IMG/VR virus record: IMGVR_UViG_3300021137_000001
Span: 186,001-250,000 of that record
Length of the DNA stretch: 64,000 bases
Strand: one strand, 5' to 3'
Positions 11,007 to 32,043 of this stretch are shown here, in pieces. The notes below the pieces were generated by a model. That model made no database searches and was not told the origin of the DNA. It saw nothing but the letters and a program-made list of their open reading frames with translations. Position numbers and translations under genes: made by a program. Position 1 is the first letter of the stretch, and each line of letters begins with the position of its first letter.

Positions 11007-12167
11007 ATGTTTTTATCACAACTTTTTGAATCAACAATTAAACATGCATCATTTTGCTTTGGTCGCATGAACCCACCTACTCTCGGGCACGGGCAATTAA
11101 TTGACACAGTAGCGCAAGCTGCACAAGGTGGAGATTACTTTGTGTTTGCAAGTGGTACACAAGATAAGAAAAAGAATCCGTTAGATTACGCTACAAAAAT
11201 TAAATTCCTCAGAGCTTTGTTTCCCGAACAAGCAAGTCACATTGTAAACGACCCAACACTAAAAACTATCATGCAAGTTGCTGAGTGGTTGTATGCACAG
11301 GGTTATAGATCAGTTACGTTTGTAGCTGGTAGCGATAGACTTGATAGCTTTAAACAATTATTAACTAGTTACAATGGTGTCGAAGGTAAAGATGTTTACT
11401 ACAAATTTGATGCTATTAACTTTGTAAGCAGTGGCGAACGTGACCCAGATGCTGATGGTATTGCTGGTATTAGTGCTAGTGGCGCACGTGAAGCGGCTGT
11501 TAATAGTGATATCAATGCATTTGCGCAAGCAACAGGCGCCGGTAAACTAACACAACCATTGTATGATGCAGTACGTAAGGGTATGTTGTTAGAAGGCTTA
11601 CATGAAAGTTTTCCGGAAGTCTACAGCAACATTGTTGATGCTGCTATTAATGCCAGACGAAAAGGTAAGAAAGTAGTTAAGTCAGCGGGCGGTTACTATA
11701 AAGTTACTGACAAGACTGATTTGGCGACCGAAATAGTTCCTAACGAAGAATACTTATTAAAACAAAGAACTATTATTGCTCGTGTTAAAACAATTGATTT
11801 TGAAATTATTAAAAATTTCGAAAGACCATTTGGACAAGAACGAGTAGAATTAGCACATAGTCTACCTATCGATCCAAAAACTAACAGGTTTATAAATGTT
11901 GACGACTGGGTCAATGGATTAGATAAGCTACGTCAAAAATATTTTGCCAAAGAATACGACGATCTTGAGACAGAAAAACGTAAACTTAGAACTGAACTTA
12001 AGATTCTAAGAAAAACTGAGAAAGCATATACAGAATTAGCAGAGTGCAGTGGCTACATTCCAAAGAATAAGAAAGAAGCAAAAGATCCACGCTGGAGTAA
12101 TTCTCTTACTGTAGATATTAAACCAGGTGCGATTAACAAAAATCTCAAAGCATTGCGCTTAATTTAA
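11007..12167 (+). CDS. Phage cytidyltransferase-like (HIGH superfamily) protein with appended modules
   Basis: FGRMNPPTLGH, KNPL, VAGSDR, ISAS..R; leader MFLSQLFE. Confidence 0.8.
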   Translation: MFLSQLFESTIKHASFCFGRMNPPTLGHGQLIDTVAQAAQGGDYFVFASGTQDKKKNPLDYATKIKFLRALFPEQASHIVNDPTLKTIMQVAEWLYAQGYRSVTFVAGSDRLDSFKQLLTSYNGVEGKDVYYKFDAINFVSSGERDPDADGIAGISASGAREAAVNSDINAFAQATGAGKLTQPLYDAVRKGMLLEGLHESFPEVYSNIVDAAINARRKGKKVVKSAGGYYKVTDKTDLATEIVPNEEYLLKQRTIIARVKTIDFEIIKNFERPFGQERVELAHSLPIDPKTNRFINVDDWVNGLDKLRQKYFAKEYDDLETEKRKLRTELKILRKTEKAYTELAECSGYIPKNKKEAKDPRWSNSLTVDIKPGAINKNLKALRLI

Positions 12168-12168
12168 T

Positions 12169-12480
12169 ATGAATGCAGTAAATCTTACAGTTGAAGTACA
12201 CTGTTTAAAGCCAAGCTGGGTCAATCACGAAAACAACAAATATCGCATATATGTCAATGATGATTTATTAACCGAACGCACATGGATATGGGAATTAAAT
12301 ACCTTAATCAATGAAAATATCTGGGTCATTATTCCCGCAAATAGTACTAATACTGTTAGACTCGAACAAATTCTACAAGATAAATCAGTAGCTCAATTCG
12401 CACTTCGTAATTTACAAGTTGCCGATGCGCCATTTACCTCAGAACAAATCAATGATCTAACCATAAGTTTTACATTGTAA
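12169..12480 (+). CDS. Hypothetical protein
   Basis: 103 aa, YRIYVNDDLLTERTW. Confidence 0.7.
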   Translation: MNAVNLTVEVHCLKPSWVNHENNKYRIYVNDDLLTERTWIWELNTLINENIWVIIPANSTNTVRLEQILQDKSVAQFALRNLQVADAPFTSEQINDLTISFTL

Positions 12481-12491
12481 TAAATACATAT

Positions 12492-12665
12492 ATGAAAATA
12501 AATGACATTATTCAACGACCAGACTTAACCGAAGATGCAACAGGCGGCGGTACAAGTGCCGGCGCAATTGCTACAATCCCAGGTGTTGGTACAGGTGCTA
12601 AAGTGGGCGCACTGTTCGGTGGCACTTATAAACAACCTAAAACTAAAAAGAGAAAAACGAAATGA
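12492..12665 (+). CDS. Small Gly-rich protein with basic tail (57 aa, not in the ORF track)
   Basis: Follows ATAAATA at 12480; MKINDIIQRPDLTE|DATGGGTSAGAIA...; stop overlaps the next ATG. Confidence 0.75.
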   Translation: MKINDIIQRPDLTEDATGGGTSAGAIATIPGVGTGAKVGALFGGTYKQPKTKKRKTK

Positions 12666-15544
12666 TGCGTAAACTATTAGAAGCTATGACTAAATTTGCT
12701 AACCCTGAACAAAAACCGGGTGAGCAGTGGAAGGGTACAGATAAGGGTACTCCGGGCAATAAATTAGTAGGTAGCGCAGATGAAAGTGTGCTTAAAGATT
12801 TAAGCAAAGGTCAAACTCCAAAAACTAAAGAAGAAGAATTAGCTGAAGCATTTGCTAACTTTAACGAAGATGACTTAGGTGTAGAAGAAAAACGCCCACA
12901 TCGCACTGGTTCACGTGCAGATAGAGTTGGCGAACGTGGACATAAAGAACAACCTCGTTACACAACAGTTAAAGACAATGTAGACGAAGCAACTGCTGCA
13001 GAACTTAAAGTAGGAGATCACGTTACAGCAAATACAAGTAAAGGTGAAAAGTGGAATGAATCTGCTGATATGTTTAAAGCTGGACAACGTGCTATTAAGA
13101 ATATAAAATCTACAGAGCAACAACGTAAAGCAGAAGCAAACAAAATGGCGCAAGCGCAATCACAGATTGATGTAGATAAAGAAAACGAGCGTGATAGATT
13201 TAGTCAAGAAGAATTATACCCATCAGATGACTCACATGATTTAGATGAAGGTGCTGCTGACGTTTACTCAATAACATCAGAAAGAAATGGTAGAGAGCGT
13301 AGTAAGTCTGGTACGTTAGCTGAACTTATTGAATACTATGGCTACACATTAGAAACTGGTAAATCATACGAACATGAACGTGGTAACAGCAAAATCAATC
13401 TTAACCCGAAAAATATTGAATCATTGGTGCAAAATTTAAACAATGCTAAAAGCAATGCAGCGGCTAATGGACAAAGTAACGAACGCTTTTACGTAGATAA
13501 TGGTAACATGGCAGAAGGTAAACACTTTAAAACAGCTTACGGTTGGGCAGGTGGACGTAATGAAAAGACTGGTAAAATGTACAAACATCCAGATCAAATC
13601 AAAGCAGACCGAGAAGCAAACAAAATGGCACAAGCTCAAGCACAAATTGATGCAGACAGAGAAAAAGAACGTGACAGATTTAGTCAAGAAGAACTATATC
13701 CATCAGATGACTCACACGATTTAGATGAAGCAGCTTATGATCCAACTATGGGATATTCTGGCAGCAAATGGAATTATACTCCATCTAAAATTGAGCGACA
13801 AAAAGAAAAAAGAGTGCCGCTACGAACATTCCAAGAATTGTGTGATATGTTAGGTATAAGCCGACACGCCATGGCAAATATTGCAAAAAAAGTATCCGAC
13901 TTTCCGAAACCAATCCCGGGTATTGGCGGTAAAAAAACATATTATGATCCACAAAAATTTATACAGTGGGCTAAACAAAACGATATAAAAAAATATCTAC
14001 CTAATCAATCTAACGCAGAAGTAGCGGAAGGATGGGGTGCTGATACACAGAAAGCTGAATCAAGTCGCAGTACTGCGGCATGGGATACGCTACGTGCTAA
14101 GTACGCCAATGATCCGGCAATTATCAAAAGATTAAACTATCTTGAGCGTATGAACTGGACAGCAGCCGCAGCAGAAAAGAAAGCTAACGCTGGTGAAATT
14201 AAAGGTGTTGCTGAAAGCAAAGCAGATACAACAGGTTCGTGGGTTGTACATAGTGGTAGCAAAGTAAAGAAATTTAAAACACGCGATGGTGCTAAAGCCT
14301 ATGCTGAAAAGAATGGCGGTAAAGTAGCATCAAGCGAATTCTATGCAGACAAAGTACAAAAAGATATTAACGAAGATGTATCTTCAACAGATCCATTAGA
14401 AGGTGCGTTACTTAATGCTATCCAAGAGTTAGTTAGTCAAGGTCATAAAGATGTAGACCCGATGGTGTTAACTAATATGGTGGTTGCGGCTACAAGTCAG
14501 CCATTCTTACTTAAAGACTTAGTTGATGCTAATAACAACAGTTTAGCAATACAGCATTATATTGATAGTATTAGCCCAAGCAAAGTTAAGTTCTCAACTG
14601 ATACATTAACAGTTAAGAATGAAGATCCAAGTAAAGACAAAGCTAAATCACAAGCTGGTGTAAGCAGTATGGCCAGCAGAGCTGCAAATCGTAGCAGACT
14701 TGGTGAAGGTACAGAAGGTTTGCCAGCTAAAGCAATTGATATGATTAAGAAAATTGCAATGTCAACAGCAACACCAGAACATAAAAAAGCCGCAATTGAT
14801 GCTATTGTTGCTAAGTTCAGTAGTGTGACAGAAATGCGCCCAGATGCTGTTCCTAGTGATAGCACTGCAAGTCCATTGACTTATGCAGAGGTAACTGAAG
14901 GTATCGAAACTCCTTTACAAAATAAAGAAGATTATACTGCTAAACGTAAAGCACTACAAGATATACAATTAGATCCAGATACCAACAAAGATCCACAACT
15001 TGCAGCTGAATTAGCACGTAGATTGGGTAGTTTGAATCAACAGTACACAGACTTGCAAAGCAAATTGCGTGAATTTAAAGAATCACGTGGGCATAAAGCT
15101 ATTGCTACTAAGTTAGGTAATATAGATCGTATGCAGAATGTGCAAATTCCTACACCAGCAGAACGTAGAGAACAATTACGTATTGCTAAAGCTAAGGAAG
15201 AAGTTGGTAAAAAGCAAGTTAAAGAATTTGCGGCTCCAGGTGCTAATCCTGCTCCAGTAACAAATGCTACTCAACCAGTTGTTGATCCAGCCGCAGCGCA
15301 AAAGGTGGCAACTGCAACAAGTACAATTAAAAGTGCAACTGGTTCTACTGTAGCGGCACCTGTATTAGCTACAGCACTCGATGCTGCAAGTCAAGGACAA
15401 GCAAATCCGGCGCAAGTAAAAGCAATTGCACCGATTGCTAATGTAGTTGATGCTGCAACTAAAGATCCTAAACTAGCTGGACAGTTTAAGACACTGGCGA
15501 CGCAAGCACAACAATCACTAAAAGCACAACAAAAACCGCAATAA
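12662..15544 (+). CDS. 960 aa modular protein, putative internal head polyprotein
   Basis: Short modules separated by hydrophobic-x-E|small-residue sites; internal 40 aa duplication; HTH-like module. Confidence 0.7.
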   Translation: MMRKLLEAMTKFANPEQKPGEQWKGTDKGTPGNKLVGSADESVLKDLSKGQTPKTKEEELAEAFANFNEDDLGVEEKRPHRTGSRADRVGERGHKEQPRYTTVKDNVDEATAAELKVGDHVTANTSKGEKWNESADMFKAGQRAIKNIKSTEQQRKAEANKMAQAQSQIDVDKENERDRFSQEELYPSDDSHDLDEGAADVYSITSERNGRERSKSGTLAELIEYYGYTLETGKSYEHERGNSKINLNPKNIESLVQNLNNAKSNAAANGQSNERFYVDNGNMAEGKHFKTAYGWAGGRNEKTGKMYKHPDQIKADREANKMAQAQAQIDADREKERDRFSQEELYPSDDSHDLDEAAYDPTMGYSGSKWNYTPSKIERQKEKRVPLRTFQELCDMLGISRHAMANIAKKVSDFPKPIPGIGGKKTYYDPQKFIQWAKQNDIKKYLPNQSNAEVAEGWGADTQKAESSRSTAAWDTLRAKYANDPAIIKRLNYLERMNWTAAAAEKKANAGEIKGVAESKADTTGSWVVHSGSKVKKFKTRDGAKAYAEKNGGKVASSEFYADKVQKDINEDVSSTDPLEGALLNAIQELVSQGHKDVDPMVLTNMVVAATSQPFLLKDLVDANNNSLAIQHYIDSISPSKVKFSTDTLTVKNEDPSKDKAKSQAGVSSMASRAANRSRLGEGTEGLPAKAIDMIKKIAMSTATPEHKKAAIDAIVAKFSSVTEMRPDAVPSDSTASPLTYAEVTEGIETPLQNKEDYTAKRKALQDIQLDPDTNKDPQLAAELARRLGSLNQQYTDLQSKLREFKESRGHKAIATKLGNIDRMQNVQIPTPAERREQLRIAKAKEEVGKKQVKEFAAPGANPAPVTNATQPVVDPAAAQKVATATSTIKSATGSTVAAPVLATALDAASQGQANPAQVKAIAPIANVVDAATKDPKLAGQFKTLATQAQQSLKAQQKPQ
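13132..13730 (+). repeat. Imperfect ~119 nt direct repeat (13132-13250 and 13612-13730)
   Basis: Both copies encode EANKMAQAQxQIDxDxExERDRFSQEELYPSDDSHDLDE. Confidence 0.95.
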
Positions 15545-15549
15545 GTAAA

Positions 15550-16008: not shown

Positions 16009-16038
16009 AGTTGTTCTCAGTTGTTGTAATATAAAGCT

Positions 16039-16067: not shown

Positions 16068-16137
16068 GTCTTTTCGTAAGTTTTACTTAGAATTAAATTA
16101 GCATAAATATCTTATATGAGTCAGTCTGAGAGAAACT

Positions 16138-16809
16138 ATGCGAATACAAGATTTTAATCCAGTAATTAAAGAAGATAACGAAATGTCCGATGTTGTTACA
16201 GCACACGGGCTAGTGGGCAAATCATTGCATAATCCTACTGCACGTCAAGAATACTTTGATTATATGACACACTTGCGCAACAAGCATGGTAAAGAATATA
16301 GCACACGTGTACATCAAAAAGCAACGGCACTTGCTAAACCAGTAGAAGAAACAATTGTAAAAGTGGGCAGTCAATATGAACTTAAATCACACACTGGTAA
16401 GAACTTGGGCAAGTACCCAACTCGAGCTGGTGCTGAGAAACGTGAACAACAGGTTAATTATTTTAAGCACGTTAAAGAAGATGCGTGGACTGGTGATAAT
16501 CCAGCATGGAACAATGGCACAGATCAATGGCATAGTGCAGATGATGGATCTGGCGGTGGAGTTAGTGGTGGTGCGCCAGCAGCTCCATTAACTGGGGCAT
16601 TACCAATTGAAGAAGATTTTAATCCACAAGATGTTGTTAGTGTTGATGTTCCACTATTAATACGTTTACTTGAATATGCTCGTGAAGATGCAAAAACAGA
16701 CATGGATTTACATAATGTAACAGAACGTTTAATTGCCTTAAGTCAAGAAGGCAATACACTAACAATGCAAGATTATGACACAATTTGCAACACCAAGGAA
16801 ACTGATTAA
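16138..16809 (+). CDS. Modular hypothetical protein, putative head-internal
   Basis: Leader MRIQDF..IKE|D; junctions VEE|T, VKE|D, IEE|D; ATAAATA at 16103. Confidence 0.7.
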   Translation: MRIQDFNPVIKEDNEMSDVVTAHGLVGKSLHNPTARQEYFDYMTHLRNKHGKEYSTRVHQKATALAKPVEETIVKVGSQYELKSHTGKNLGKYPTRAGAEKREQQVNYFKHVKEDAWTGDNPAWNNGTDQWHSADDGSGGGVSGGAPAAPLTGALPIEEDFNPQDVVSVDVPLLIRLLEYAREDAKTDMDLHNVTERLIALSQEGNTLTMQDYDTICNTKETD

Positions 16810-19142
16810 TGGCATCATTACTGTATACATATATTATTAATACATCAGGACCGCGAGCATTTACTATGCCCGATGGTTTTAAAGATACCGCAGTACTTCA
16901 TTTATGGGGTGCAGGCGGTGGAGCAGGTTCAAATGCCGTAGGCGGTGGCGGTGGTTATTCCAGAACAACAGTAACAATACAAAAAGGTGACATAGTCGAA
17001 CTTGGAGTCGGCTTACCAGGTAGTCCAGCAACTGGAAACACTCCCGGCACAGGTGGCGGCAGTTCAATCGGTCTACGTTATAGTGGAGGTCCTGGAGGTC
17101 CCGGTAGTACAATATCTGGCGATGATAATATCGGCGGAGCAGGTGGTGGTGGTGGCGGCGCAACTGTTGTTATGGTTAATGGCATTGCGGTCGGAGTTGC
17201 CGGCGGCGGAGGCGGTGGGGGCGGTGGAAGTGGTTACCAAACAGGTGCGGCTGGATTGGCCGGTGGAGTATACACTGCATTAACATTAAACACACAAGGC
17301 GGTGCTGGCGCTGCTGCGTATGCAGCTGGAGGCGGTGGTGGTGGTGGCTATTTTGGCGGCGCAGCTGGTGCAGGCAAAGGTGACGATGTTGGTGGTGGCA
17401 ATGGCGGGTCTGGCGGTGAAAATTACGGCACAATTGCTATTATAGGGTCGGGAACAATTAGTGGTGGCGTAGGACAAACTTACGCACCAACAGCAAACTT
17501 TGGACACGCTGGTTACGGCGGTTATGCAGTAATTGAGTTTACCCGTAAATTCCAAATATACACAAAAGATTCAGGTACATGGCATCAAATATTAAATGCG
17601 TGGGTTAAAACACCTGCACATCAAATTCCAGCCACAATAGTACATCAACCAGAAACAGTATCATTTACTACTAATTCAACTTTTACAGTACCGGCCGGAG
17701 TAACTGCACTTACTGTAACTGCTATCGGTGGTGGAGGTGGTGGTGGAGGTGCAGATGGTAATGCAAGTGGCGGATATTACTATGATGAAGCCGGTGTATT
17801 AAAAGGTGGCTACCCGGGTGAGAAAGTGTCAGGTACTATCGCAGTCGCCCCTGGCCAAATATATACAATAACTCCGGGTAATGGTGGTGAAGGTGGACAA
17901 GGTAGAGCTAGTAGTGCAGTCGGTGGTGCAGCAGGTACTGGTTATTTTCCGGGTGGTAGAGGCGGATATGCTGGTGCATCAGGATCATCGGGAGCAGGTG
18001 GTGGCGGTGGCGCAGCAACAGTAATATTACTTGCTGGCAATCCGTTATTAGTAGCCGGTGGTGGCGGAGGCGCTGGTGGATCAGGCAATGGTGCCTATGG
18101 TGTTGCTACAATCGGTACATATACATCTGGAACAACTGGTGCACAAGGACAAGACAAATCAGGCGATGGTGGTGGAGGCGGTGGCGGAGGTGGCGGTCAC
18201 ACACAAGGCGGTTCTGGTGGACCAACACGTGGTGGCGACAGTGGCGGATATTCAGGTCAAACTGGTAAATCATTAGCACCATCAGGAACAACAGTAGGTG
18301 TTGGAACTAACGGTGGTTTATATGCAAGTGGCAACGGTGGACGTGGATCTGTCACTGTAACATACACATTACCAACTGAATATATTACTATTGCAGACGG
18401 TGGCTGGAAAGAAATTGAACAAGTATATGAAAAATATAACGGTGTATGGAATCCAGTATTAAGCATAGAAACAGTAAATGATAAACGTGGTGCACGTTAT
18501 ACTACACCTGGTACGTATGTATGGGTATGCCCTAGTGACATTGTTAGAGTTAAAGCAATGGTATACGGTGCTGGTGGTTCAGGTACTGGGGGTGCTGGTG
18601 GAGCAGGTGGATTTACAACTGATTATACAACAGTAACTCCAGGTGCGCATTATGCAGTGGTAGTCGGTGCTGGTGCAGAACCAACAGGCTCGGCAGCTGG
18701 TCAAGATAGTAGTTTTAATGTAACAGTAGTTGCCCATGGTGGAGCACACGGCGCGGCACAATCAGCTGGAACAGATGCTGGTGGTGCAGGTGGTATATCA
18801 GCAGGTGGAGATATAAATCTAACTGGGGTGGCTGGTACAGCAGGAAACGCTCTTTATTCATACTACTACTATTGGTGGGGTGGCTGGAATAGCTACTACG
18901 GTTGGGGAGGTTATAACTATTATAACTACAATGGTATCGGTAATTACGCCAACGGGTATTATGGCTATAATTATAACTACGGTTATAACAACTATGGTTG
19001 GGGCGGATGGTATGGCTGGGGATGGCCGTACTCTTATCAATCTGGTTATAACTATGGTACGCCAGGAGTTGGTTATGATGGAATCGGTGGTGGGGCAGTT
19101 ACTACTACAGGCGCACCGGGTGCAGTACTTATTGTGTACTAG
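16809..19142 (+). CDS. Glycine-rich virion, tail-fibre or adhesin-like protein
   Basis: Three Gly-rich domains each opening with a xGxGG poly-Gly run; Tyr/Trp/Asn/Gly-rich C-terminal insert. Confidence 0.7.
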   Translation: MASLLYTYIINTSGPRAFTMPDGFKDTAVLHLWGAGGGAGSNAVGGGGGYSRTTVTIQKGDIVELGVGLPGSPATGNTPGTGGGSSIGLRYSGGPGGPGSTISGDDNIGGAGGGGGGATVVMVNGIAVGVAGGGGGGGGGSGYQTGAAGLAGGVYTALTLNTQGGAGAAAYAAGGGGGGGYFGGAAGAGKGDDVGGGNGGSGGENYGTIAIIGSGTISGGVGQTYAPTANFGHAGYGGYAVIEFTRKFQIYTKDSGTWHQILNAWVKTPAHQIPATIVHQPETVSFTTNSTFTVPAGVTALTVTAIGGGGGGGGADGNASGGYYYDEAGVLKGGYPGEKVSGTIAVAPGQIYTITPGNGGEGGQGRASSAVGGAAGTGYFPGGRGGYAGASGSSGAGGGGGAATVILLAGNPLLVAGGGGGAGGSGNGAYGVATIGTYTSGTTGAQGQDKSGDGGGGGGGGGGHTQGGSGGPTRGGDSGGYSGQTGKSLAPSGTTVGVGTNGGLYASGNGGRGSVTVTYTLPTEYITIADGGWKEIEQVYEKYNGVWNPVLSIETVNDKRGARYTTPGTYVWVCPSDIVRVKAMVYGAGGSGTGGAGGAGGFTTDYTTVTPGAHYAVVVGAGAEPTGSAAGQDSSFNVTVVAHGGAHGAAQSAGTDAGGAGGISAGGDINLTGVAGTAGNALYSYYYYWWGGWNSYYGWGGYNYYNYNGIGNYANGYYGYNYNYGYNNYGWGGWYGWGWPYSYQSGYNYGTPGVGYDGIGGGAVTTTGAPGAVLIVY

Positions 19143-20494: not shown

Positions 20495-21859
20495 ATGAGA
20501 ATAATTGACCTATTAACCGAAGCCGTGAGCAGTGTAGTATACCACTACACTAATCTCGATGCCGCCGCAAAGATACTTACAACAGGGCAGTTTGCACTTA
20601 GCTCGACTCTTGGAAGTATAGAAGAAAAGTTTGCTCCGAAAGGTCTGCCATACTTTCTAAGTACAACACGTACAAGACGCGGAGGATATCACTCTAACGC
20701 AATCGGTGATGGTGCCGCAATGTTTAACTTAGATGGCAACTATTACAATCAGCGTTACAAAGGTGGCCCAATTGATTATTGGGGCGACAGACATAATGAC
20801 TATGGTCGTACCGCAGAAGCCGAGGATAGAATATTTAGTAAAGAACCAACAATGCCTGCTGGTGGCATTACATCAGTACATATATTTGTTAAGCCATTAC
20901 CGGTTGCAGCAGTACCGGGTTCATCAGTTGACATACGTGCCCGTGAATCGATATCTAGTTATGCCGCACGTGCTCGTACTGCATTGTTAGCTGCTAAGAA
21001 AGCCGGCATACCTGCATACTTGTACGAAGATAGACTAGGTTGGGTAAATCAAGACCCTACTGCACGTATAGCAATCACTGGTTCACGTGATACATTACGT
21101 GGACAAATTCCAATGTACAATCCAAGTCACCCACCAAGACAGTATATGGCTAAGTGGTTAGAGTTAATGTACAAAGATAGCACTAAAGCACTTAGCACAC
21201 AAAACTTTGGCGATTTACATTCGTTAATATACAATGATCCATATTGGCTTAAAGAGATGGTTACAAGTTTATCATCCGATTTAAGTAATGCTCGCAAACC
21301 ATCAGCTGGGGCAGATAGAGAAGTTGCTGTTAAAATTATTTCGTATATGAATCGACATGGCTTACATACAGTAACAGACTTTATTATGGCATTGCGTAAA
21401 AAGTGGACGATAATTAAAAACAAAGAGCAAGAAGCAAAGTATGATGCTGAACAAGCCGACTACGCAAAGTTTCAAGCAAAAGAAAAAGCAGCACAGCCAG
21501 AGTTAGCAGAGTCAACCAATCCTAAGTCAGCATCACCTGATGAAATTTTTGATTATATAGAAAGCATACACACTGGTCCGGGTTTACACGATACTAACGA
21601 TGATGAACTAAGTACAGAAGAATGGGTACATCAGTTTGATTCATTTGAATTACAACCAGTCAACTTATCAACACTTGCGTTAAAAGCAGGTTCAAACAAA
21701 CAAGCAAAAATAGATCAATACGCACAAAGTCAAGAAGAGTTCCCACCAATTGTAATAGACGGTTCAAGTGATTGGATTATTGATGGGTATCATCGTGCTA
21801 ATGCAGCCGCACAACGTGGCGACACAACAATAATGGCATACGTAGGAGTAGGAAGATGA
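20495..21859 (+). CDS. Two-module protein with C-terminal ParB/Srx-like domain
   Basis: Leader MRIIDLLTE|A; junction LAE|S; PPIVID..IIDGYHRANAA. Confidence 0.7.
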   Translation: MRIIDLLTEAVSSVVYHYTNLDAAAKILTTGQFALSSTLGSIEEKFAPKGLPYFLSTTRTRRGGYHSNAIGDGAAMFNLDGNYYNQRYKGGPIDYWGDRHNDYGRTAEAEDRIFSKEPTMPAGGITSVHIFVKPLPVAAVPGSSVDIRARESISSYAARARTALLAAKKAGIPAYLYEDRLGWVNQDPTARIAITGSRDTLRGQIPMYNPSHPPRQYMAKWLELMYKDSTKALSTQNFGDLHSLIYNDPYWLKEMVTSLSSDLSNARKPSAGADREVAVKIISYMNRHGLHTVTDFIMALRKKWTIIKNKEQEAKYDAEQADYAKFQAKEKAAQPELAESTNPKSASPDEIFDYIESIHTGPGLHDTNDDELSTEEWVHQFDSFELQPVNLSTLALKAGSNKQAKIDQYAQSQEEFPPIVIDGSSDWIIDGYHRANAAAQRGDTTIMAYVGVGR

Positions 21860-22593
21860 AAATAACAGAAGGTGGAAATGTATTTAAGTTAGCTGACGGT
21901 TCTCCTGCAACACAACGAATAAACAAAGCCGATGTATTGCCTACTGTACAATGGTTAGAACAACTAACTGGACTTAATTTAGTCGATAATATGCTTGGGT
22001 CTACTGGATACAAAGAAACAAGTGGTGATTTGGATCTTGCTGTTGACGGAAGTAAAATTAGTAAAGATGTACTTGTACAACAATTATTAAAGAAAGGCAT
22101 CGAGCCAACTGATATTAAAAAGACTGGCGATAGTGTACATTTAAAAACTCCAATCAATGGCGAAGGAAAGTTCGGATTTGTACAGACCGACTTTATGATA
22201 GGAGATCCAAACTTCCAACGTTTTAGCATGACAGGTAGCCCAGAAGGTAGTCCATTCAAAGGTATGCATCGTCATGTATTACTTGCTAGTATTGCCAAAG
22301 CACAAGGCATGAAATGGTCATACAAAAATGGCCTAATGGATAGAGCAACTAACGAAGTTATTTCAAAAGATCCATCTGAAATAGCACACAAATTATTTAA
22401 TGGTAGTGCGGCTGATTTAGCATCAGTTGAAACTATACTTGCTAAGATTAAAAATCGTCCCGACTACAATGCACTAGTAGCAGACGCAAAAGAAACACTA
22501 GGTAAAGAAAATGTACAATTGCCAGAAACACAACAAGCAACAGTAAGCGAAGGTTCGGCAGCATGGTTTAAAAACTGGAAGGCAGTGCTGTGA
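21856..22593 (+). CDS. Pol-beta superfamily nucleotidyltransferase-like protein
   Basis: LGSTG..SGDLDLAVD, VQTDFM; leader MKITE|GG. Confidence 0.7.
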   Translation: MKITEGGNVFKLADGSPATQRINKADVLPTVQWLEQLTGLNLVDNMLGSTGYKETSGDLDLAVDGSKISKDVLVQQLLKKGIEPTDIKKTGDSVHLKTPINGEGKFGFVQTDFMIGDPNFQRFSMTGSPEGSPFKGMHRHVLLASIAKAQGMKWSYKNGLMDRATNEVISKDPSEIAHKLFNGSAADLASVETILAKIKNRPDYNALVADAKETLGKENVQLPETQQATVSEGSAAWFKNWKAVL

Positions 22594-23045
22594 GAGCAAG
22601 AGAGTTTATTATAGAAGGAAAGTTTAATTGGAATGAGTATGCAAGTATTCCAATTAAAGATCGGATTACTATAATCGAATCATTGTTAACAAATAAAAAT
22701 CTACTAGAATCTAATGATATTGAGTATGCAGATTTTTTTCAAGAATTGATCAATTCATCAATTCACGCAGTCAACGGAAATTCGTATATAGTATGTGTAA
22801 TAGCATTAGTAAGTAATACCGTTATCTTAGTAGAACCACCTGTAACCGGCGAGCTCGTTGACACCCTAAACGATGAATATAAAATCAAAACAAGTACTGG
22901 TATTAAAGATTTTCCAGACAATTATCACTGGAGGGAGATGTTAGCTCATACTTTCTTTTTTAATAATCGGGATGAATATAATAAATTTAGAACAGTAATA
23001 AAATTAAGATTTAATAAAGATTTACCGGATACAGGTATAAAATAA
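22590..23045 (+). CDS. Hypothetical protein, paralog of 24806-25309
   Basis: GTG start, leader MRAREFIIE|G; C-terminal FFFN..EYNKFRTVIKLRFNKDLP. Confidence 0.75.
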   Translation: MRAREFIIEGKFNWNEYASIPIKDRITIIESLLTNKNLLESNDIEYADFFQELINSSIHAVNGNSYIVCVIALVSNTVILVEPPVTGELVDTLNDEYKIKTSTGIKDFPDNYHWREMLAHTFFFNNRDEYNKFRTVIKLRFNKDLPDTGIK

Positions 23046-23878: not shown

Positions 23879-24816
23879 GAGCAAGAGAATTTATCTTAGA
23901 GGGTGGATGGGCAAGTACTTTAACACAAGGTACACACATTACACCTGCGTTAGTTGATGTTGTAGTACAATCAATGCCTGCGTTACAACAAGCACTAAAT
24001 GCCTTCTTAAAAACTAAAGACCTGGCACCTGTTAAGATTGGCACACCTGTTGGTAGTACAACATACTACAAGAGAGATCTTGCGCAAAATCCAACTCGTG
24101 AGTACGGCGATATTGATGTTAACTTCTTTGTGCCTCGTTTACCCAATATGTCAGACAATGCAAATGAACAAACATACAGTGCCGCAATTAAAGAGTTTTG
24201 CGATAGTAATCCAAACTATTCAACTAACAACGGTACGAATGTTATAATTAGAGTGGGCGATCAATATGTACAAGTTGACTTTGTTACTTCGTACTATGAA
24301 AATGAACAGTGGAGTCGTGCATTAGGTCCAGAATACAATGTCAAGGGTGTACTAAGCGCAAGTTTATATTCATCATTGGCAGAAGCATTAAATCTTAGTT
24401 TTGGCGGACGTGGTGTACAAGTTAAATTACAAAATGGCGTTCCGGTTAGTTTTAGACAAACTAAAGATACAGAGCTTAAAACCGTAACAAACAATCCCGA
24501 CACTTGGGCAATTGATATTGCTAAGTTTCTTGGCGCAAAAACTATTAGTCCACGTTTAGCCAAATATCCGGGCATGGGCGACGAAATAAAGACACTAAAC
24601 ACTATTAACAGTATTGTTGGCATTGCCGAAAGTTTAAACAAACCTGAGTTAATAGAACAGGTGAAAGCAATCTACATAAGTAAAATAAGCAAGGCAGTTA
24701 ATAGTAGTAAGTTTGACAAGGCGGCTACTCCAGAAGCAATTAAAAAAGCCGAAGATACTAAAGCATTATTGACTAGAGAAGCACAACGTATATTAGGACA
24801 GTTCGATGCGATTTAA
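23875..24816 (+). CDS. Pol-beta superfamily nucleotidyltransferase-like protein
   Basis: VGST...YGDIDV, VQVDFV; leader MRAREFILE|GG. Confidence 0.7.
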   Translation: MRAREFILEGGWASTLTQGTHITPALVDVVVQSMPALQQALNAFLKTKDLAPVKIGTPVGSTTYYKRDLAQNPTREYGDIDVNFFVPRLPNMSDNANEQTYSAAIKEFCDSNPNYSTNNGTNVIIRVGDQYVQVDFVTSYYENEQWSRALGPEYNVKGVLSASLYSSLAEALNLSFGGRGVQVKLQNGVPVSFRQTKDTELKTVTNNPDTWAIDIAKFLGAKTISPRLAKYPGMGDEIKTLNTINSIVGIAESLNKPELIEQVKAIYISKISKAVNSSKFDKAATPEAIKKAEDTKALLTREAQRILGQFDAI

Positions 24817-25320
24817 AGAGATATTAAACGAAGTTACAGTGTGTTGGGATGGGATATCAATATCATCAATGAGCGATAAACTGAAATTTTTTGAACAATA
24901 TTGCTCAAAAAAGTCATATCTTAGAGAATCAATTGATACATCCGATGTAGAAATATTTGAATCATTATCACATTATGCCACATCTCCTGTTGTAAATAAT
25001 TGGTATATCGGTGCGTTATTAATGTTATTAGAGAATAATAATGTTATTCCATTCAATGACGCACAAATTTTAAAATACACAGGCACAAGTACAGGAGCAG
25101 ACGGTATTATCATTATACATTTTCTTAAAGAAGATGGTACCAAAGGAACATGGCCGGATTCGGTCCTCTCAGAGAAAAGTTATTATAAATCATTTCTATT
25201 CGATTCAACCGCACAGTATGATATATTTAGATCAGCAGTAGCATTAAGATATAGTAAACCATTGCCAAAAATTGAGTCGGACAAATTAGGAAAGCAAGAT
25301 GCGATTTAAAGAGATATTAA
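24792..25320 (+). repeat. Direct repeat covering SD, start and leader codons (24792-24827 and 25285-25320)
   Basis: Identical 23-mer GATGCGATTTAAAGAGATATTAA at 24805 and 25298, each preceded by ATTAGGAxAG. Confidence 0.9.
24806..25309 (+). CDS. Hypothetical protein, paralog of 22590-23045
   Basis: Leader MRFKEILNE|V; FLFD..QYDIFRSAVALRYSKPLP. Confidence 0.75.
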   Translation: MRFKEILNEVTVCWDGISISSMSDKLKFFEQYCSKKSYLRESIDTSDVEIFESLSHYATSPVVNNWYIGALLMLLENNNVIPFNDAQILKYTGTSTGADGIIIIHFLKEDGTKGTWPDSVLSEKSYYKSFLFDSTAQYDIFRSAVALRYSKPLPKIESDKLGKQDAI

Positions 25321-26633
25321 GAGAGTATAGTAGAGAGAAAACTGCTAACGTGTTTGGCAAGAAACTTATTGCGGCACTACTAGCAGAAAAGGGATTGAAC
25401 TATGGTGGAGCGGGGTTTCATCAAATCTTATCTGACATTAGATTTAGAATACAACAAAAGTTAAAGATTGGCTCACCGCTTGATGCCGAACAAGAAGACT
25501 TAACTGCTAAACAAATACTACACGCCATCGAACAAGGCGATCCAACACCAAATAAAGAGTATGTACAGTGGCTGGCAAAATGCTATGCAAATGAAGGCGT
25601 AAAGCTGGAAGATATCGTCAGTAAAGGGGCAGATTGGCTCAAAACTTACGCTCAATTGAAGGTTAAACGTCTACTACCACCAAATGTCACAAACATAATG
25701 AATTTGAAGTTTGCACAGTTGCCAGACGTTGTATTCGACGAAGAGCTTGTTAGCAAACTACAAGCGGCGGAAGATAAGACAGCAGACAAAGGTAAGGCAA
25801 CTACAGTATTTGAGAATGGCGCAGTACGTATTATTGTACCACAAGATGAAACTTCAGCTTGCTACTATGGACAAGGTACACGTTGGTGTACTGCGGCACG
25901 TGCAAACAATATGTATGATAACTATGCTCGTGATGGCGACTTATATATAATGTTGCCAAAACAACCTAAGTATGATGGCGAGAAGTATCAATTGCATTTT
26001 GCTAGTGGACAGTTCATGGACGAGGGTGATAGTCCAGTGAGTGATATGATTGCGTTATTAACTGGTCGCTTTGGCGATGATGTCATGACGTTTTTCTTTA
26101 ATAAAGAGCCAATGATTAAACAATGGATTGTAGTTACTCCAGCAGAAATATTACAACCATTAATAGATCAAATTGCTGACATCGCTAGCGACTACATAAA
26201 CGATAAAATAAGTGATTGGGAAATGGAAGATGACTATTACTACAACGAGCTACGTGAAAAGGGCTATGTTGACGAAGATGGTGATGTTGACTGGACCAGA
26301 GTTGAAAAAGATGGCATGTCTTGGTTAGAAACTAATGATGAGGCGCAGGAATGGCTTAGTAGAGCACAAGATGCTGTTAGACCAAGTATTGATAGATTAC
26401 GCGATGCGGCACAAGAGTGGGCTGAAGACAATGGTGAGGAATGTACGCTACATCAGTTAGATAGTTTAGTGGCCAGTATTGTTATAGAAGAATTTACATC
26501 ACGTCGTGGCAATACTGAAGATGGTGGGCTATCTGAGTGGATGGAAAAACATATTCAAATACGTGCATCAACTCCATCACAACAAGCTGCGGGCGAGCCG
26601 CAGTGGAAAGCTGAATATACTAAAGGGCAATAA
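25299..26633 (+). CDS. Hypothetical protein with CxYGxxTxWCT domain, paralog of 23048-23878
   Basis: Leader MRFKEILRE|Y; IIVP..SACYYGQGTRWCTA; acidic C-terminus. Confidence 0.75.
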   Translation: MRFKEILREYSREKTANVFGKKLIAALLAEKGLNYGGAGFHQILSDIRFRIQQKLKIGSPLDAEQEDLTAKQILHAIEQGDPTPNKEYVQWLAKCYANEGVKLEDIVSKGADWLKTYAQLKVKRLLPPNVTNIMNLKFAQLPDVVFDEELVSKLQAAEDKTADKGKATTVFENGAVRIIVPQDETSACYYGQGTRWCTAARANNMYDNYARDGDLYIMLPKQPKYDGEKYQLHFASGQFMDEGDSPVSDMIALLTGRFGDDVMTFFFNKEPMIKQWIVVTPAEILQPLIDQIADIASDYINDKISDWEMEDDYYYNELREKGYVDEDGDVDWTRVEKDGMSWLETNDEAQEWLSRAQDAVRPSIDRLRDAAQEWAEDNGEECTLHQLDSLVASIVIEEFTSRRGNTEDGGLSEWMEKHIQIRASTPSQQAAGEPQWKAEYTKGQ

Positions 26634-27742
26634 TGAAATTATCAGACGTACATCGTAAAACAAACAGAGTTGACTGTACATTTGACGGCAGTTGGACAGC
26701 ACCATCTACGATTGTAGTTAAAGCAGTGCTTAAACAAGAACACAAAGATTGGACTAACGAGTGGGAAAAAGAAGTTATGCGTGGAGAAGCATTATTAAAT
26801 GTTTCATCACATACACTTTATGTTAGTCGCATCGACGCTCGACCATCGGGACAAGGCTTCGGTGGTGAAATGCTTAAATGTATTATTGAACATGCACGTG
26901 CGCATAAGATTCCCCGTATTGAAACATACGTTGAAAACAACAATGCTGATTCACGTAACTTATTTAGAAAAGCGGGCTTTGAAGAAATGCCCGGAACAGA
27001 TGGCGGAAGATGGCGTCTGGACTTAACAACTAACGAAGCACGTATACCTAAAGATGTTGTAAAGAATAATGTTGCTTATCACAATGAACTTAATCCAGCG
27101 GCATGGGATGGTGATCATTTAAATCCAGAAGTAAAAGATCGTTTACTAGAAATTGCTGAACGTTTTGTTAGTTATTTAGAAATCCCAGACTTTAAAGTAT
27201 TAGACATTGTACTAACTGGTAGTATGTCTAACTATAACTGGACTAAGTTTAGTGACTTTGACCTACACGTAATTACAAATTATAGTGATTTAAAATGCGA
27301 TAACATTGTAGCAGAGTTTTATCACGCTAAGAAAAAGATATGGAATGATGATCACGATATTACTATCTATGGTTATGATACTGAGTTGTATGTTGAAGAT
27401 TCTAAAAACCCACCAGTTAGTGAAGGTGTGTATAGTATACTAAATGACGAATGGGTTAAGACTCCTACATATAGTCCGCCAAGTATTAACAACAATGCTG
27501 TTAATGCCAAGGTTAGAGATTTAATTAATCAAATCGATACTGCTATTAGTACAGCAGATGACCCAGCAGACATTAAACGTATATCAGACAAACTTGCTAA
27601 AATGCGCAGAGCAGGCTTAGATGAAGCCGGTGAGTTTAGTACAGAGAACTTGGCGTTTAAAATATTACGTAACATGAAATACATTGATAGATTACACAAA
27701 GCATATCATCAGCAACAAGATGATGAACTTAGTTTGAAATAA
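26633..27742 (+). CDS. GNAT acetyltransferase fused to a nucleotidyltransferase
   Basis: SGQGFGGEML, NADSRNLFRKAGF (GNAT); LTGSMSNYNW..SDFDLH (NTase); junction TNE|A. Confidence 0.8.
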   Translation: MKLSDVHRKTNRVDCTFDGSWTAPSTIVVKAVLKQEHKDWTNEWEKEVMRGEALLNVSSHTLYVSRIDARPSGQGFGGEMLKCIIEHARAHKIPRIETYVENNNADSRNLFRKAGFEEMPGTDGGRWRLDLTTNEARIPKDVVKNNVAYHNELNPAAWDGDHLNPEVKDRLLEIAERFVSYLEIPDFKVLDIVLTGSMSNYNWTKFSDFDLHVITNYSDLKCDNIVAEFYHAKKKIWNDDHDITIYGYDTELYVEDSKNPPVSEGVYSILNDEWVKTPTYSPPSINNNAVNAKVRDLINQIDTAISTADDPADIKRISDKLAKMRRAGLDEAGEFSTENLAFKILRNMKYIDRLHKAYHQQQDDELSLK

Positions 27743-27747
27743 AATTA

Positions 27748-27834: not shown

Positions 27835-27849
27835 AACTTGATTTCTGTA

Positions 27850-27856
27850 ATAAATA
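27850..27856 (+). promoter_or_regulatory. T4-late-like (T)ATAAATA promoter motif, representative copy
   Basis: ATAAATA sits shortly upstream of starts at 2238, 9441, 12480, 16103, 19155, 20482, 27850, 55928 and 57429, and on the minus strand before all five endonuclease genes. Confidence 0.65.
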
Positions 27857-27877
27857 CACTATAATAAGAGAATCCTG

Positions 27878-30800: not shown

Positions 30801-31075
30801 TTAGAATTGCACAAGCAGCACCAGCCAACAACTTAAAACGATATAGAGTGGGCAATCATACATACGGTCGTGAAATTATACATGCAGCAAATCGTGAAGA
30901 AGCTATTCGTTTGTTTGCTTTCAACAATAACATATCAGTTGATGACGTTACTTCGGGACCGAGCTTTGTAGCAGATTTAGTAGATGACGAACAGTCACAA
31001 GATGCAGCCGCACAGTTAGCAACTCAAGTAGCAGAATCACTCAACCGTATGCGTAAACTAGCAGGGCTGAAGTAA
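27878..31075 (+). CDS. Putative amidoligase (COOH-NH2 ligase type 2) with long C-terminal extension
   Basis: IGIEFE, IEPDGSI, LEFISPP, TNSSTGLHMNIS, KYTSIN, VEFRGPGG; leader MRFKEIKKLFE..LDE|V; ends ESLNRMRKLAGLK. Confidence 0.8.
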   Translation: MRFKEIKKLFETTQLDEVSMSPTNLQKFLNSPEAIGMLIGIEFEMAVPNVDGSDDEDSNYEPDYSYNESCTDISEIVNFFQHGDFASMGRSDANRVRDDLFEEYMNWSYDAAEDYVNDHDDDLTSNIRSRLFDNEVDRDDTAEEAHTRWVEENPDGDTASEEASEEIRNLTLQMMEDKLDAMMEDIESSEYQNAYDEAKQEMEYDFRNSGDGDMEAWLSDIGVNDMQDAAGQWGLDWPHMEDTNYNNGGASIETVADEFAEWMGLSNVNSSSKYHGARRDGKSWCIEPDGSIDHDENEAGLEFISPPLPLKDGLEQMTKIIAWANDKGCRTNSSTGLHMNISVPDYNFDHLDFVKLALFMGDEHILEQFGRTYNNFCKSALKIVKEKIDKEGVAGPLLQAMRDHLNVAASKAVHNGTTQKYTSINTQTGYVEFRGPGGDYLNQDITQLISTALRLAQSLRIATDPLAHKQEYAKKLYKLVVPTDKDTDDDNSVAMFTRYAMGQIKKDDLLNSLRQAQSTRKAKKFPHGPKREWTVVRKSNPGYKVSFNASSAAEALQLAKNQIGGWQGVADEHFKVTADASGDSAYNKAREEHYLSTMNPVWQKFIRDIATIDTDRLKKRKAEFETKSESTPLEEWEKIALTKINNELATRKDDVAATGAIDDLEELPQQHREYAQDIQNKSEDTLNRIKAEIEAGDFRNALTNIQASIFLGVVVNELARRAGLTADMADLDGFVNTLGQTSTWQLYNPATDEVLATYTGLTQGQAIDRRSAMRSNQGNENIEMRNLGSAEQSTAQANATPSTLWDNWIRTLPTRNTDSINSFRDQIRGGEHNNTLPSEHERDVVIIAIDDELRSRMARGEGSGTRTYTIYDGTGRIVNTIRSTSVARALDDFGENNDIDTTHYTARELGVTYNNYGDAQAAADTQNSAQRLGPGQSTYSVEHIPTGQVTSQIGNDAADAIQRVARLTGSTPNNFRIAQAAPANNLKRYRVGNHTYGREIIHAANREEAIRLFAFNNNISVDDVTSGPSFVADLVDDEQSQDAAAQLATQVAESLNRMRKLAGLK

Positions 31076-31716
31076 TGAACATATTTGAAATGTTCGACGA
31101 GCCAAAGCAACTAACGCTGATTGATGCGTTACGTGACTTTTTACCTATCGCTATTGCATACTTAGAGTTAGATCACATTCCTAAAATTAAGTTAGTTAAA
31201 TCATTAGACGATACAACATTTGGGCATTTCAATAGCGAAGAACAAGTAATATATGCTGTAGTTGCTAATCGTAACCCAGTTGATATTTTACGTACTATTG
31301 CACACGAAATGACACACTACAAGCAAGGACAGGAACATCAACTTACTAACGACTCTGGTGAAACAGGTAGCACAGTTGAAGACGAAGCAAACGCAGAAGG
31401 TGGTGTTATTATGCGTGAGTTCAATGAGCAATTCCCACAATACTTACAATCTAGTTCAGTACAGTTAGCAGAAAGTGTTAAGTATGAAATTAAAAGTACA
31501 AAAGAAAATGGGCAACTTGAATTCTTCGGTACTACTGTAGACTTTCGCGGGTCAGCAATGAATAGAGCAATTAACGCATTAGATAGAACTAGCCGTCCAG
31601 TACAAGTATCTACTATAGAATACAGCAGTGAAAAGAAACGTTTTGTACCTATTAAAACAGTAATTATTAATCCGGGCGAGAATGTTAAGACTAAAATACT
31701 AAGTCTAGATGACTAA
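31075..31716 (+). CDS. Zincin-like metallopeptidase (HExxH) plus a C-terminal module
   Basis: LRTIAHEMTHYKQ..EDEANA; junction LAE|S. Confidence 0.75.
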   Translation: MNIFEMFDEPKQLTLIDALRDFLPIAIAYLELDHIPKIKLVKSLDDTTFGHFNSEEQVIYAVVANRNPVDILRTIAHEMTHYKQGQEHQLTNDSGETGSTVEDEANAEGGVIMREFNEQFPQYLQSSSVQLAESVKYEIKSTKENGQLEFFGTTVDFRGSAMNRAINALDRTSRPVQVSTIEYSSEKKRFVPIKTVIINPGENVKTKILSLDD

Positions 31717-31719
31717 CTC

Positions 31720-32043
31720 ATGAGAGCAACTGAATTTATAATCGAAACAAAAGTCGGCACGTTACATATCAACGGGTTAATTATTGATGTTGATGATCAT
31801 TCATTTGAACGTACAGCAGGGCGCAGAGTAAATACTGCAATGATTGACAGAGTTGTGCGCAGACTAGTTAACATACAAGATCAAATAATCAAAATAGAAG
31901 CTGGTCAGAAGTTTTGGGTTTATAGTCAGGCATTTGATATAGGACTTGGCTTAAGAAAACAATCAGATTCAAATCGTATATTACTAAAAACTGTAGTAGG
32001 TGATCGCCCATGGGATAGTGATATTCCAGTCTTAGAACTATAA
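31720..32043 (+). CDS. Hypothetical protein with CTS-like leader
   Basis: MRATEFIIE|T. Confidence 0.7.
   Translation: MRATEFIIETKVGTLHINGLIIDVDDHSFERTAGRRVNTAMIDRVVRRLVNIQDQIIKIEAGQKFWVYSQAFDIGLGLRKQSDSNRILLKTVVGDRPWDSDIPVLEL

Follow-up and report, generated by a model that had tools for sequence, protein, structure and literature searches.

Introduction

The locus studied here lies in a 64,000-nucleotide stretch of virus DNA (the window). The window covers positions 186001-250000 of Ga0214165_1000003 (JGI 3300021137), a metagenomic contig of 329,321 bp sampled from a bog lake. Between positions 11007 and 32043 the window holds a block of genes whose otherwise unrelated products begin with a similar short leader ending in Glu, and the question is what this leader does. 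Phage proteins injected with the DNA act ahead of phage gene expression and are a main route to disable defences and take over the cell. Outside T4 and the phiKZ-like phages, such proteins are hard to recognise.

The original prediction took the leader for a tag of the T4 type, by which proteins are packaged into the head as cargo. Our analysis supports this reading, and the computational tests directed against it all came out in its favour. We put the probability at about 75% that the leaders are the jumbo-phage form of the T4 capsid targeting sequence (CTS) combined with a propeptide of the prohead protease, serving both targeting and cleavage. Injection of the proteins and a function against host defences are held with less confidence, and the anti-defence payload is offered as a hypothesis.

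Leader sequences of the block

All 14 N-termini named in the original prediction were found at their positions, and the JGI gene calls use the same starts, including a GTG at 22590. Genes are named below by their start positions.

11007..12167, plus strand: MFLSQLFE (8-residue class), then a cytidylyltransferase-like HxGH nucleotidyltransferase, 386 residues
12492..12665, plus strand: MKINDIIQRPDLTE, then a Gly/Ala-rich basic protein, 57 residues
12662..15544, plus strand: M(M)RKLLE, then a protein without assigned function, 960 residues
16138..16809, plus strand: possible leader MRIQDFNPVIKE, protein of 223 residues; weakest member
20495..21859, plus strand: MRIIDLLTE, then a DarT-like ADP-ribosyltransferase fold (residues 10-320) and a possible ParB-like C-terminal domain
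21856..22593, plus strand: MKITE, then a protein of 245 residues with a G-D-L-D-L motif, putative Pol-beta-type nucleotidyltransferase
22590..23045, plus strand: MRAREFIIE (GTG start), protein without assigned function, 151 residues
23048..23878, plus strand: MRAIEFIIE, then a protein of the phrog_28193 family with a conserved G-T-x-W-C-T motif, 276 residues
23875..24816, plus strand: MRAREFILE, then a protein of 313 residues with a G-D-I-D motif, putative nucleotidyltransferase
24806..25309, plus strand: MRFKEILNE, protein without assigned function, 167 residues
25299..26633, plus strand: MRFKEILRE, protein of the same family as 23048, without assigned function, 444 residues
27878..31075, plus strand: MRFKEIKKLFE, protein of 1065 residues with an amidoligase domain at residues 249-455
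31075..31716, plus strand: MNIFEMFDE, then a zincin-like protein of 213 residues (HEMTH at residue 77)
31720..32043, plus strand: MRATEFIIE, protein without assigned function, 107 residues

These 14 genes code for 5061 residues. The leaders are 5-14 residues long, with 11007 defining one class of 8 residues, and their consensus can be written as M-[RK]-x-x-[ED]-[FIL]-[ILF]-x-E. A regular expression built from the gp21-processed N-termini of T4, ^M.{2,4}[EDQ][FILMV][FILMVTAN].E, matched 8 of the 18 plus-strand genes in 11007-32043.

Strict matches to the regular expression, plus strand: 20495, 22590, 23048, 23875, 24806, 25299, 31075, 31720

The motif is confined to the block. The expression matched none of the other 63 genes of the window, none of the 39 genes in the 10 kb on either side, and only 1 of about 490 internal Met positions (Fisher p = 1.4e-6 for the window, 5e-8 once the flanks are included). 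Replication and early genes had been claimed to lack the leader, and this held for all 102 genes outside the block (replication, metabolism, lysis); the motif is thus not equally common there (0/102 against 8/18). The minimal feature, [FILMV]-x-E within the first 12 residues, occurred in 12/18 block genes and 7/63 genes outside (p = 7e-6), and therefore is not specific alone. Five further genes of the list (11007, 12492, 12662, 21856, 27878) are backed by their orthologues. The remaining gene, 16138, shows the minimal I-x-E feature only, and the N-terminus of its orthologue fails to align.

The original prediction described about 15 tagged proteins over the roughly 21 kb of the interval. Of the 14 that it listed, 16138 is the weakest, and six genes inside the interval have no leader.

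Leaderless genes in the interval: 12169, 15550 (minus strand), 16809, 19181, 20073, 26633

Comparison with the processed proteins of T4

The CTS of T4 and its processing by gp21 were reportedly studied by Mullaney & Black in 1996 and by Repoila et al. in 1994. The CTS is carried by IPI, IPII, IPIII and Alt and removed by the gp21 prohead protease (reviewed in PMC3012670, PMC5694885, PMC12373910). To avoid circularity, we took the T4 sequences directly from NC_000866. In the following, a slash marks the point after the leader Glu. IPII and IPIII begin with MKTYQEFIAE/A, IPI with MKTFKEFTSTTTPVSTITE/A (MKTFKEF...ITE/A), Alt with MELITELFDE, gp24 with MAKINELLRE/S, gp22 with MLKEQLIAE/A, and gp21 itself with MNEPQLLIE/T. 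The resemblance to the CTS that had been claimed for the block was confirmed with these fetched sequences, which share the core [EQ]-[FL]-[IL]-x-E with the leaders.

When the regular expression, together with an 8-residue variant, was run on 54 kb of T4, it returned gp21, gp22, gp24, IPII and IPIII, and besides these only gp2 and vs.6. Five of the seven matches are known gp21 substrates, and therefore the pattern is a fairly specific marker of such substrates. Like a propeptide, the leader ends in (L/I)-x-E ahead of a small or polar residue in the 8 strict matches, and orthologues support the same for 5 more genes. The short leader of 21856 (MKITE) has its parallel in T4 Alt, which is cleaved at ITE-6 (PMC5694885). 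In both AlphaFold2 (AF2) models that we built (20495 and 25299), the leader is a low-confidence N-terminal appendage, with a mean predicted local distance difference test score (pLDDT) of 67 and 38, respectively, over the first ten residues.

Leader across environmental viruses

IMG/VR was scanned with a degenerate DNA pattern coding for M-R-A-x-E-F-I-I-E, which gave at least 120 loci. Among the matches listed, all 126 of 126 lay at the start of an open reading frame (ORF), and 101 instances were unique. Over these 101 the choice among synonymous codons is free (Ile ATT/ATA/ATC 44/35/22, Phe TTT/TTC 76/25). A small or polar residue follows the Glu (A, N, G, S, D, T or R), and the cargo downstream falls into at least 25 unrelated BLAST clusters. 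As a control, 596 Gb of bacterial and archaeal genomes were scanned in the same way; of the 25 matches there, 19 lay inside longer ORFs, and the remaining ones were on contigs of metagenome-assembled genomes that look phage-derived. The leader is a widespread, phage-specific, portable module under selection at the protein level.

Local BLAST against environmental relatives showed that orthologues freely interchange leader variants. Orthologues in the zincin family of 31075, for example, begin with MNIFEMFDE, MRAKEFIIE, MRIQELLE or MKITEIIVE. The tag is portable: unrelated cargo stands behind it, and untagged homologues exist. The family of 20495 has more than 200 homologues, and about 100 of the 120 inspected have an 8-9-residue leader directly ahead of [SAG]-L-S-x-x-V-[YF]-H-Y-T, while those of Dickeya phage JA13 and Salmonella phage Sen-NF have no leader and begin right at the DarT-like domain. 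Fusion proteins of this family keep L/I-x-E at the junction ahead of the domain in 16 of 16 cases. In contig L012 (positions 646-2088) a 481-residue protein has MRAKEFIIE at its N-terminus and a second, internal leader, ...NIKEFIIE/, right ahead of the DarT-like domain. It looks like a fusion of two tagged genes, and both its internal leader and the junction L-x-E of the other fusions look like retained cleavage sites.

These results bear on the possibility that the feature acts as nucleic acid, as an enhancer of translation initiation or a recombination cassette, and has no function as a peptide. Gene shuffling is indeed evident, leader variants differ among orthologues, and the starts of 24806 and 25299 share 22 identical nucleotides. 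The free third positions with fixed amino acids over the 101 instances argue against it, as do leaders of different length and DNA sequence holding the same position in orthologues, operon neighbours that lack a leader, and the L-x-E at internal fusion junctions, where translation does not start. We consider this explanation the least probable of those discussed here.

Source phage and head genes of its relatives

The window belongs to an uncultured freshwater jumbo phage, and its genes were found again in other assemblies. A megablast search of the block against cultured phages gave no match, and none is close at the DNA level. The family-B DNA polymerase at 33249-35834 showed 52% identity to that of Sinorhizobium phage Phosso, 46% to Agrobacterium phage Atu_ph07, and about 44% to those of Serratia BF and the Erwinia and Yersinia Rak2-like jumbo phages. 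The order DnaJ, Clp-type ATPase, variable slot, DNA polymerase and MoxR-vWA pair is common to the window and Atu_ph07. From the polymerase identities and this gene order, the phage is therefore a group 2.2 jumbo myovirus sensu Iyer et al., of the Atu_ph07/Phosso/Rak2-like kind. The window carries a DnaJ and two-AAA Clp-type ATPase pair at 6217-9419 and a MoxR-AAA and vWA/DUF2201 pair at 58691-63290, and both pairs are typical of group 2.2 according to Iyer et al. (PMC7824862). A gp23-type capsid protein and a T4 gp21-type (S77) prohead protease are reported for all group 2 jumbo phages (PMC7824862). The freshwater jumbo phages of the bS21 paper (PMC9723584) were considered and set aside, being a different group with 27-34% guanine plus cytosine.

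Three contigs with leaders (L013, L016, L073) bear homologues of T4 gp21 and gp23, and a gp21-type protease is present in the relatives Phosso, L016, L073 and PA5oct. In L016 the order is portal, a 75-residue protein beginning MNLFEIFE/P, an acidic protein beginning MSKYEKLIE/Y, the protease (gp21 homologue) and the scaffold; then follow the capsid protein, MSQVLLE/GRWGETKEALLE/G (MSQVLLE/GRW..ALLE/G), one ORF of 497 residues, and six consecutive leader genes, among them an orthologue of 20495. With 65-71% identity between its capsid protein and those of Vibrio phage 2.275.O, Phosso, PA5oct and Serratia BF, L016 falls in the same jumbo group as the window. In Phosso the gp21 homologue (XYS97484; E = 2.4e-20) is flanked by proteins beginning MRYNEFSKE, MQKVELSKVLDLLIAE, MRASELFE (immediately after the protease) and MNQGLKELLE, and the capsid protein begins MSKLFE/SNW..ALCE/G.

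As an independent sample, 80 IMG/VR head loci were collected with a protease profile. The capsid proteins in them begin MS..LLE/.RW..TK.ALLE/G; 43 capsid proteins with a ..LLE-type propeptide were recognised by pattern and 47 by homology to T4 gp23. The 32 motif-positive genes of these loci code mostly for capsid proteins, for acidic scaffold-like proteins upstream of the protease (MNKFEQLIE/Y), and for proteins of about 70 residues after the portal (MFLKQLVE/N, MNLLEVFE/Q). By position, these are the counterparts of T4 gp23 and of the core proteins gp67 and gp68. The expected protease substrates of the phage group, capsid and scaffold or core proteins, thus bear the same motif as the enzymes of the window, and therefore the motif marks both alike. 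For gp150 of PA5oct (MKINDIITE/G), a small-protein homologue, the GenBank record notes detection in virions by electrospray ionisation tandem mass spectrometry.

The DnaJ gene and the gene for the 770-residue Clp-type ATPase lie directly upstream of the block (6217-9419), and the leader could instead be recognised by a partner outside the prohead, such as this ClpA/B-like AAA+ protein or DnaJ, and act as a degron, a timing device or a localisation signal. However, the leader is near-identical to the CTS and the gp21 substrates of T4, and in relatives it stands, next to the protease, on capsid and core proteins. Elsewhere (L016) the leader genes have head genes and not Clp beside them, and Atu_ph07 has the DnaJ-ClpA pair yet no adjoining leader genes. 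Recognition by such a partner is very unlikely.

ATAAATA motif upstream of the block genes

The original prediction held that the block uses ATAAATA motifs of late type. The window contains 11 plus-strand copies, against 22.6 expected from composition, and nine of the 11 lie between genes, each 12-41 nt ahead of a gene on the plus strand. Five copies are in the block, as claimed, ahead of 12492, 16138, 19181, 20495 and 27878.

ATAAATA motif, plus strand: 12480..12486, 16103, 19155, 20482 and 27850 (block); 2238 (outside the block)

The distance is 12 nt for 12492, 35 nt for 16138 and 28 nt for 27878. One copy precedes the virion structural gene at 2264, and in the head loci the motif lies within 60 nt upstream of 17% of genes. 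These positions fit a T4-like late promoter.

The tagged proteins

The AF2 model of 20495, built with 44 homologues, reached a pLDDT of 90.9. The top six Foldseek matches in the PDB were all DarT, with probabilities of 0.54-0.99 (at least 0.96 for the top five) and a best E of 8e-3; the target-normalised template modelling (TM) score was 0.32-0.46 at 10-12% identity. Members of the family carry [YF]-H-[YF]-T at the N-terminus as well as an invariant E-x-E; H17, T19, E108 and E110 never vary, so that both the H-x-T motif and the catalytic Glu of the ADP-ribosyltransferase (ART) fold are present. We therefore describe 20495 as having a DarT-like ART fold. The ParB-like domain predicted for its C-terminus stayed below the threshold (ParBc_2, E = 0.099). 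No match to a macro or NADAR domain, either of which would point to a DarG-type antitoxin, was found among the scanned neighbours. In a viral structure library, homologues were found in Dickeya JA11, Atu_ph07 and Bacillus phage SP-15, and also in baculovirus ORF32. In the cultured Alishewanella phage vB_AspM_Slickus01 (L137; 141 kb), seven consecutive leader genes lie at 86.6-91.8 kb of the record. Their leaders have 12-13 residues, MKIDNLYESLLEE or a variant of it, and four of the seven genes are paralogues with the DarT-like domain. Other cultured phages with the tag are Phosso, SCTP-2 and a KVP40-like Vibrio phage.

Two enzyme assignments were solid. The cytidyltransferase predicted at 11007 matched PHROG 3041 (E = 7e-49) and PHROG 395 (E = 3e-45), as well as Pfam CTP_transf_like (E = 3e-4). 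Its orthologues start with MLLNELFE, MKLRELFE or MKLLELFE immediately ahead of the conserved nucleotidyltransferase motif HVTFCFGRMNPPTIGH, and because they begin there, the internal ATG is the true start of 11007. The amidoligase of 27878 was likewise confirmed (Pfam Amidoligase_2, E = 8.7e-15); orthologues of this protein bear MRAxEFIIE/T..LDEIDMSPSSL or MRYSQIKQALKE/A.

For the zinc peptidase predicted at 31075, the HExxH motif is invariant in the family alignment (H77, E78, H81), which supports the assignment, while Pfam gave a weak DUF6782 match only (E = 0.036) and a PDB profile search returned nothing. The nucleotidyltransferases predicted at 21856 and 23875 stand in the same way: their G-x-D-x-D motifs are typical of Pol-beta, and neither has a family match. 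In the 21856 family S56, D58 and D60 are invariant, and relaxed Pfam and PDB profile searches with this protein gave no match. Orthologues of 21856 start with MILLE/GGNVFK and MKLFE/GGN, against MKITE/GGN in the window, and those of 23875 with MRAKEFILE/GGWAS and MRIKELFE/GGWDT.

The 23048 protein belongs to its PHROG family with E = 1.4e-33. Its orthologues start with MRAREFIFE/DYKDAK, and a homologue in Salicola phage SCTP-2 reads ...NQILLE/SYKDARKSF. Orthologues of the related 25299 start with MRAKEFILE/YNQTKT and MRARHFIIE/YDRSKT. Relaxed Pfam scans and PDB profile searches returned nothing for this family, and the AF2 model of 25299 (pLDDT 80) had no fold match in the PDB. By eye, the C-terminus of 22590 resembles that of 24806. 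The orthologue of the small protein 12492 starts with MKIKELLE/TATAGATSAG.

In 12662 the N-terminus M[RK]KLLE/A.TKFAGEPEQKPGEQW, also written M[RK]KLLE/A.TKFAGEPEQKPGEQWKG, is kept in more than 70 homologues whose C-termini differ widely, and some homologues have a canonical leader, MDIKQLLE. At 12662-12760 and in homologues P0121-P0197, an N-terminal module of 25 residues (MRKLLEAMTKFAGEPEQKPGEQWKG) is conserved far above the remainder of these proteins of 500-1600 residues. This suggests a second conserved element just past the putative cleavage site.

The nature of the cargo bears on another explanation, in which the tag does target the prohead core while the proteins are only assembly or scaffold parts, or act in the producer cell or in the head, and are then degraded or left behind. 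The same motif does stand on scaffold-like and core proteins, which are degraded in T4 (PMC5694885), and the cargo shows no significant shortage of internal cleavage-like motifs. The cargo proteins are, however, folded enzymes (the DarT-like ART with its pLDDT of 90.9, the amidoligase, the zincin) and not acidic coiled-coil scaffold, and the fusion junctions keep one L-x-E site, which resembles the release of intact domains. In T4, moreover, the proteins with a single N-terminal site, the internal proteins and Alt, are those retained and injected. An assembly-only role is unlikely, and it is the alternative to which we give most weight.

Weighing of the packaging reading

We infer the following course of events. 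The block genes would be transcribed late from the ATAAATA-type promoters, and by its leader each protein would attach to the scaffolding core while the prohead assembles. A serine protease of the gp21 family (S77) would then cut after the Glu of (L/I/F)-x-E, and the mature protein would stay with the DNA inside the head and enter the host cell alongside it. The cargo would be mostly enzymes, namely the DarT-like ART, the giant amidoligase, the zincin, the cytidylyltransferase-like protein and the putative Pol-beta-type nucleotidyltransferases, together with the unassigned proteins. The block is proposed to correspond, on a multi-gene scale, to Alt and the internal proteins of T4.

Several observations weigh against this reading. 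We inspected 84 kb of the genome, that is the window with 10 kb on each side (record 176-259 kb), and found neither the prohead protease nor the head module in it; the protease-profile scan of IMG/VR returned no locus assignable to the source genome. The block is not adjacent to head genes: it is flanked by chaperone and lysis genes on one side and the DNA polymerase on the other, and the 10 kb on either side of the window carry replication and metabolism genes. In Atu_ph07 the slot between ClpA and the DNA polymerase is filled with unrelated tail-fibre-like genes without leaders, so synteny yields no virion evidence. PA5oct, of which 75 kb were scanned, has a single clear leader protein (gp150). 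ATAAATA is taken as late by analogy with the T4 late promoter (TATAAATA). Since 11% of other proteins have the minimal L-x-E feature, 16138 may not belong to the set. Finally, internal cleavage-like motifs are present at 0.41 per 1000 residues in the cargo against 1.76 in other proteins, a depletion that is not significant in composition-matched shuffles (P = 0.11).

Nevertheless, none of the three alternatives (scaffold-only role, recognition by Clp/DnaJ, RNA-level element) agrees with the data as well as a T4-type leader, because of the identity with T4 substrates, the association with head modules, the free synonymous variation, and the L-x-E at internal junctions.

If the T4-type reading is true, the injected effectors of uncultured jumbo phages could be listed from sequence alone, here 14 proteins with about 5,000 residues, as candidates for new host-takeover or counter-defence activities. 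The T4 strategy of Alt and internal proteins would then appear scaled up to an enzymatic toolkit. The leader would also be a natural, protease-removable tag of 9 residues for loading foreign proteins into large capsids, and such a tag would exist in phages well beyond T4.

Other genes of the block and the window

One leaderless gene inside the block had been counted among the tagged nucleotidyltransferases, which was not borne out.

26633..27742, plus strand: GNAT and nucleotidyltransferase fusion, leaderless, inside the block (Pfam GNAT E = 4e-6)

Orthologues of its nucleotidyltransferase half are stand-alone genes with a leader of their own (MRLTELFE, MRARDF...), and the fusion appears to have replaced the tag. 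The product of the leaderless gene at 19181-20005 has a signal peptide and is a DNA/RNA non-specific endonuclease (Pfam 1.5e-35). Eight environmental loci that were retrieved solely through the leader carry this gene at 60-71% identity, which makes it a conserved companion of the cargo genes. The leaderless 777-residue protein at 16809-19142 has a C-terminal glycine-rich domain (Gly_rich_2, 9e-9). Its slot holds tail-fibre-like genes in Atu_ph07, and the protein may therefore serve as fibre or decoration and not as cargo.

Elsewhere in the window, a GTP cyclohydrolase I at 45734-46435 (Pfam 7e-38), a QueE-like protein at 49409-50257 (called from its N-terminal sequence only, with no Pfam match) and a PTPS/QueD protein at 54152-54703 suggest a 7-deazaguanine (preQ0-type) pathway, so the DNA of the source phage is possibly modified. 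An S-adenosylmethionine decarboxylase homologue (20073-20462), a glutamine amidotransferase (439-975) and a B12-binding radical-SAM protein (47296-49368) are enzymes of auxiliary metabolism or of modification. The replication genes on the plus strand are interrupted by minus-strand ORFs at 42968-43705, 50832-51413, 53338-54015, 56213-56959 and 59821-60477. Those at 50832, 53338 and 59821 have GIY-YIG-like N-termini, and the JGI calls give faint or weak NUMOD3 matches for 56213 and 59821; these ORFs look like homing endonucleases.

Comparison with known systems

The closest known system is that of T4. The likeness consists of a leader of 6-19 residues ending in (L/I)-x-E, with a near-identical core EF-I-x-E, common to unrelated proteins; of tagged genes clustered in hypervariable loci; of one cargo that is an ART, as Alt is; and of jumbo relatives with a gp21-family protease and a gp23-type capsid protein. 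As a leader-tagged ART, 20495 is a direct parallel to Alt. In contrast to T4, a Tequatrovirus, the phage is an uncultured 329-kb member of the Atu_ph07/Phosso/Rak2-like group of jumbo phages. It has 14 tagged genes (against IPI-III and Alt in T4), and the cargo is mostly large enzymes and not small basic inhibitors. Its ART has a DarT-like fold, whereas Alt is of the R-S-E type, and the leader consensus, MRAxEFIIE, has one residue less and is kept over hundreds of environmental contigs.

The DarT ADP-ribosyltransferase toxins, which act on single-stranded DNA, resemble 20495 in fold and in the H-x-T-type motif and E-x-E. 20495 differs from them in its phage leader, its variable C-terminal fusions, the 10-12% identity and the TM scores of 0.43-0.46, and it has no adjacent DarG-type antitoxin.

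In polyvalent proteins and in effectors fused to MuF or to the portal, for which packaging and injection are predicted (Iyer et al., cited in PMC7824862, PMC9503650), the domains are the same, namely ART, GNAT, zincin, ParB-like and nucleotidyltransferase, and their proposed logic is the same, delivery coupled to the DNA for early action. In the window these are separate genes (57-1065 residues), each with a short, putatively cleavable tag, and no giant polypeptide or head-domain fusion that would unite many effector domains was found; the related contig L063 carries a 1467-residue fusion of nucleotidyltransferase, zincin and amidoligase modules.

The ejection (inner-body) proteins of phiKZ and SPN3US are likewise head-internal proteins of giant phages that are cut after Glu by a gp21-related protease (PMC5694885, PMC10052503). 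There the protease is of type S80, the motif is S/A/G-x-E or A-x-E, and the propeptides are long, with no short portable consensus leader. This lineage belongs to group 1 and has a virion RNA polymerase, unlike the group of the window phage.

Literature searches on the leader sequence and on a CTS of jumbo phages led only to the work on T4 and on SPN3US/phiKZ. They gave no earlier account of the tag in Rak2/Atu_ph07-type phages, of its near-invariant environmental consensus, of the number of tagged genes or of the enzymatic cargo. In T-even phages at least 10 internal proteins have been recognised through their signal sequence (PMC12373910), and the principle is known there. We lean slightly towards the wider view that the 9-residue portable tag marks a very large repertoire of capsid-loaded, DNA-delivered enzymes in freshwater and other environmental jumbo phages, among them DarT-like ARTs, nucleotidyltransferases, zincins and amidoligases.

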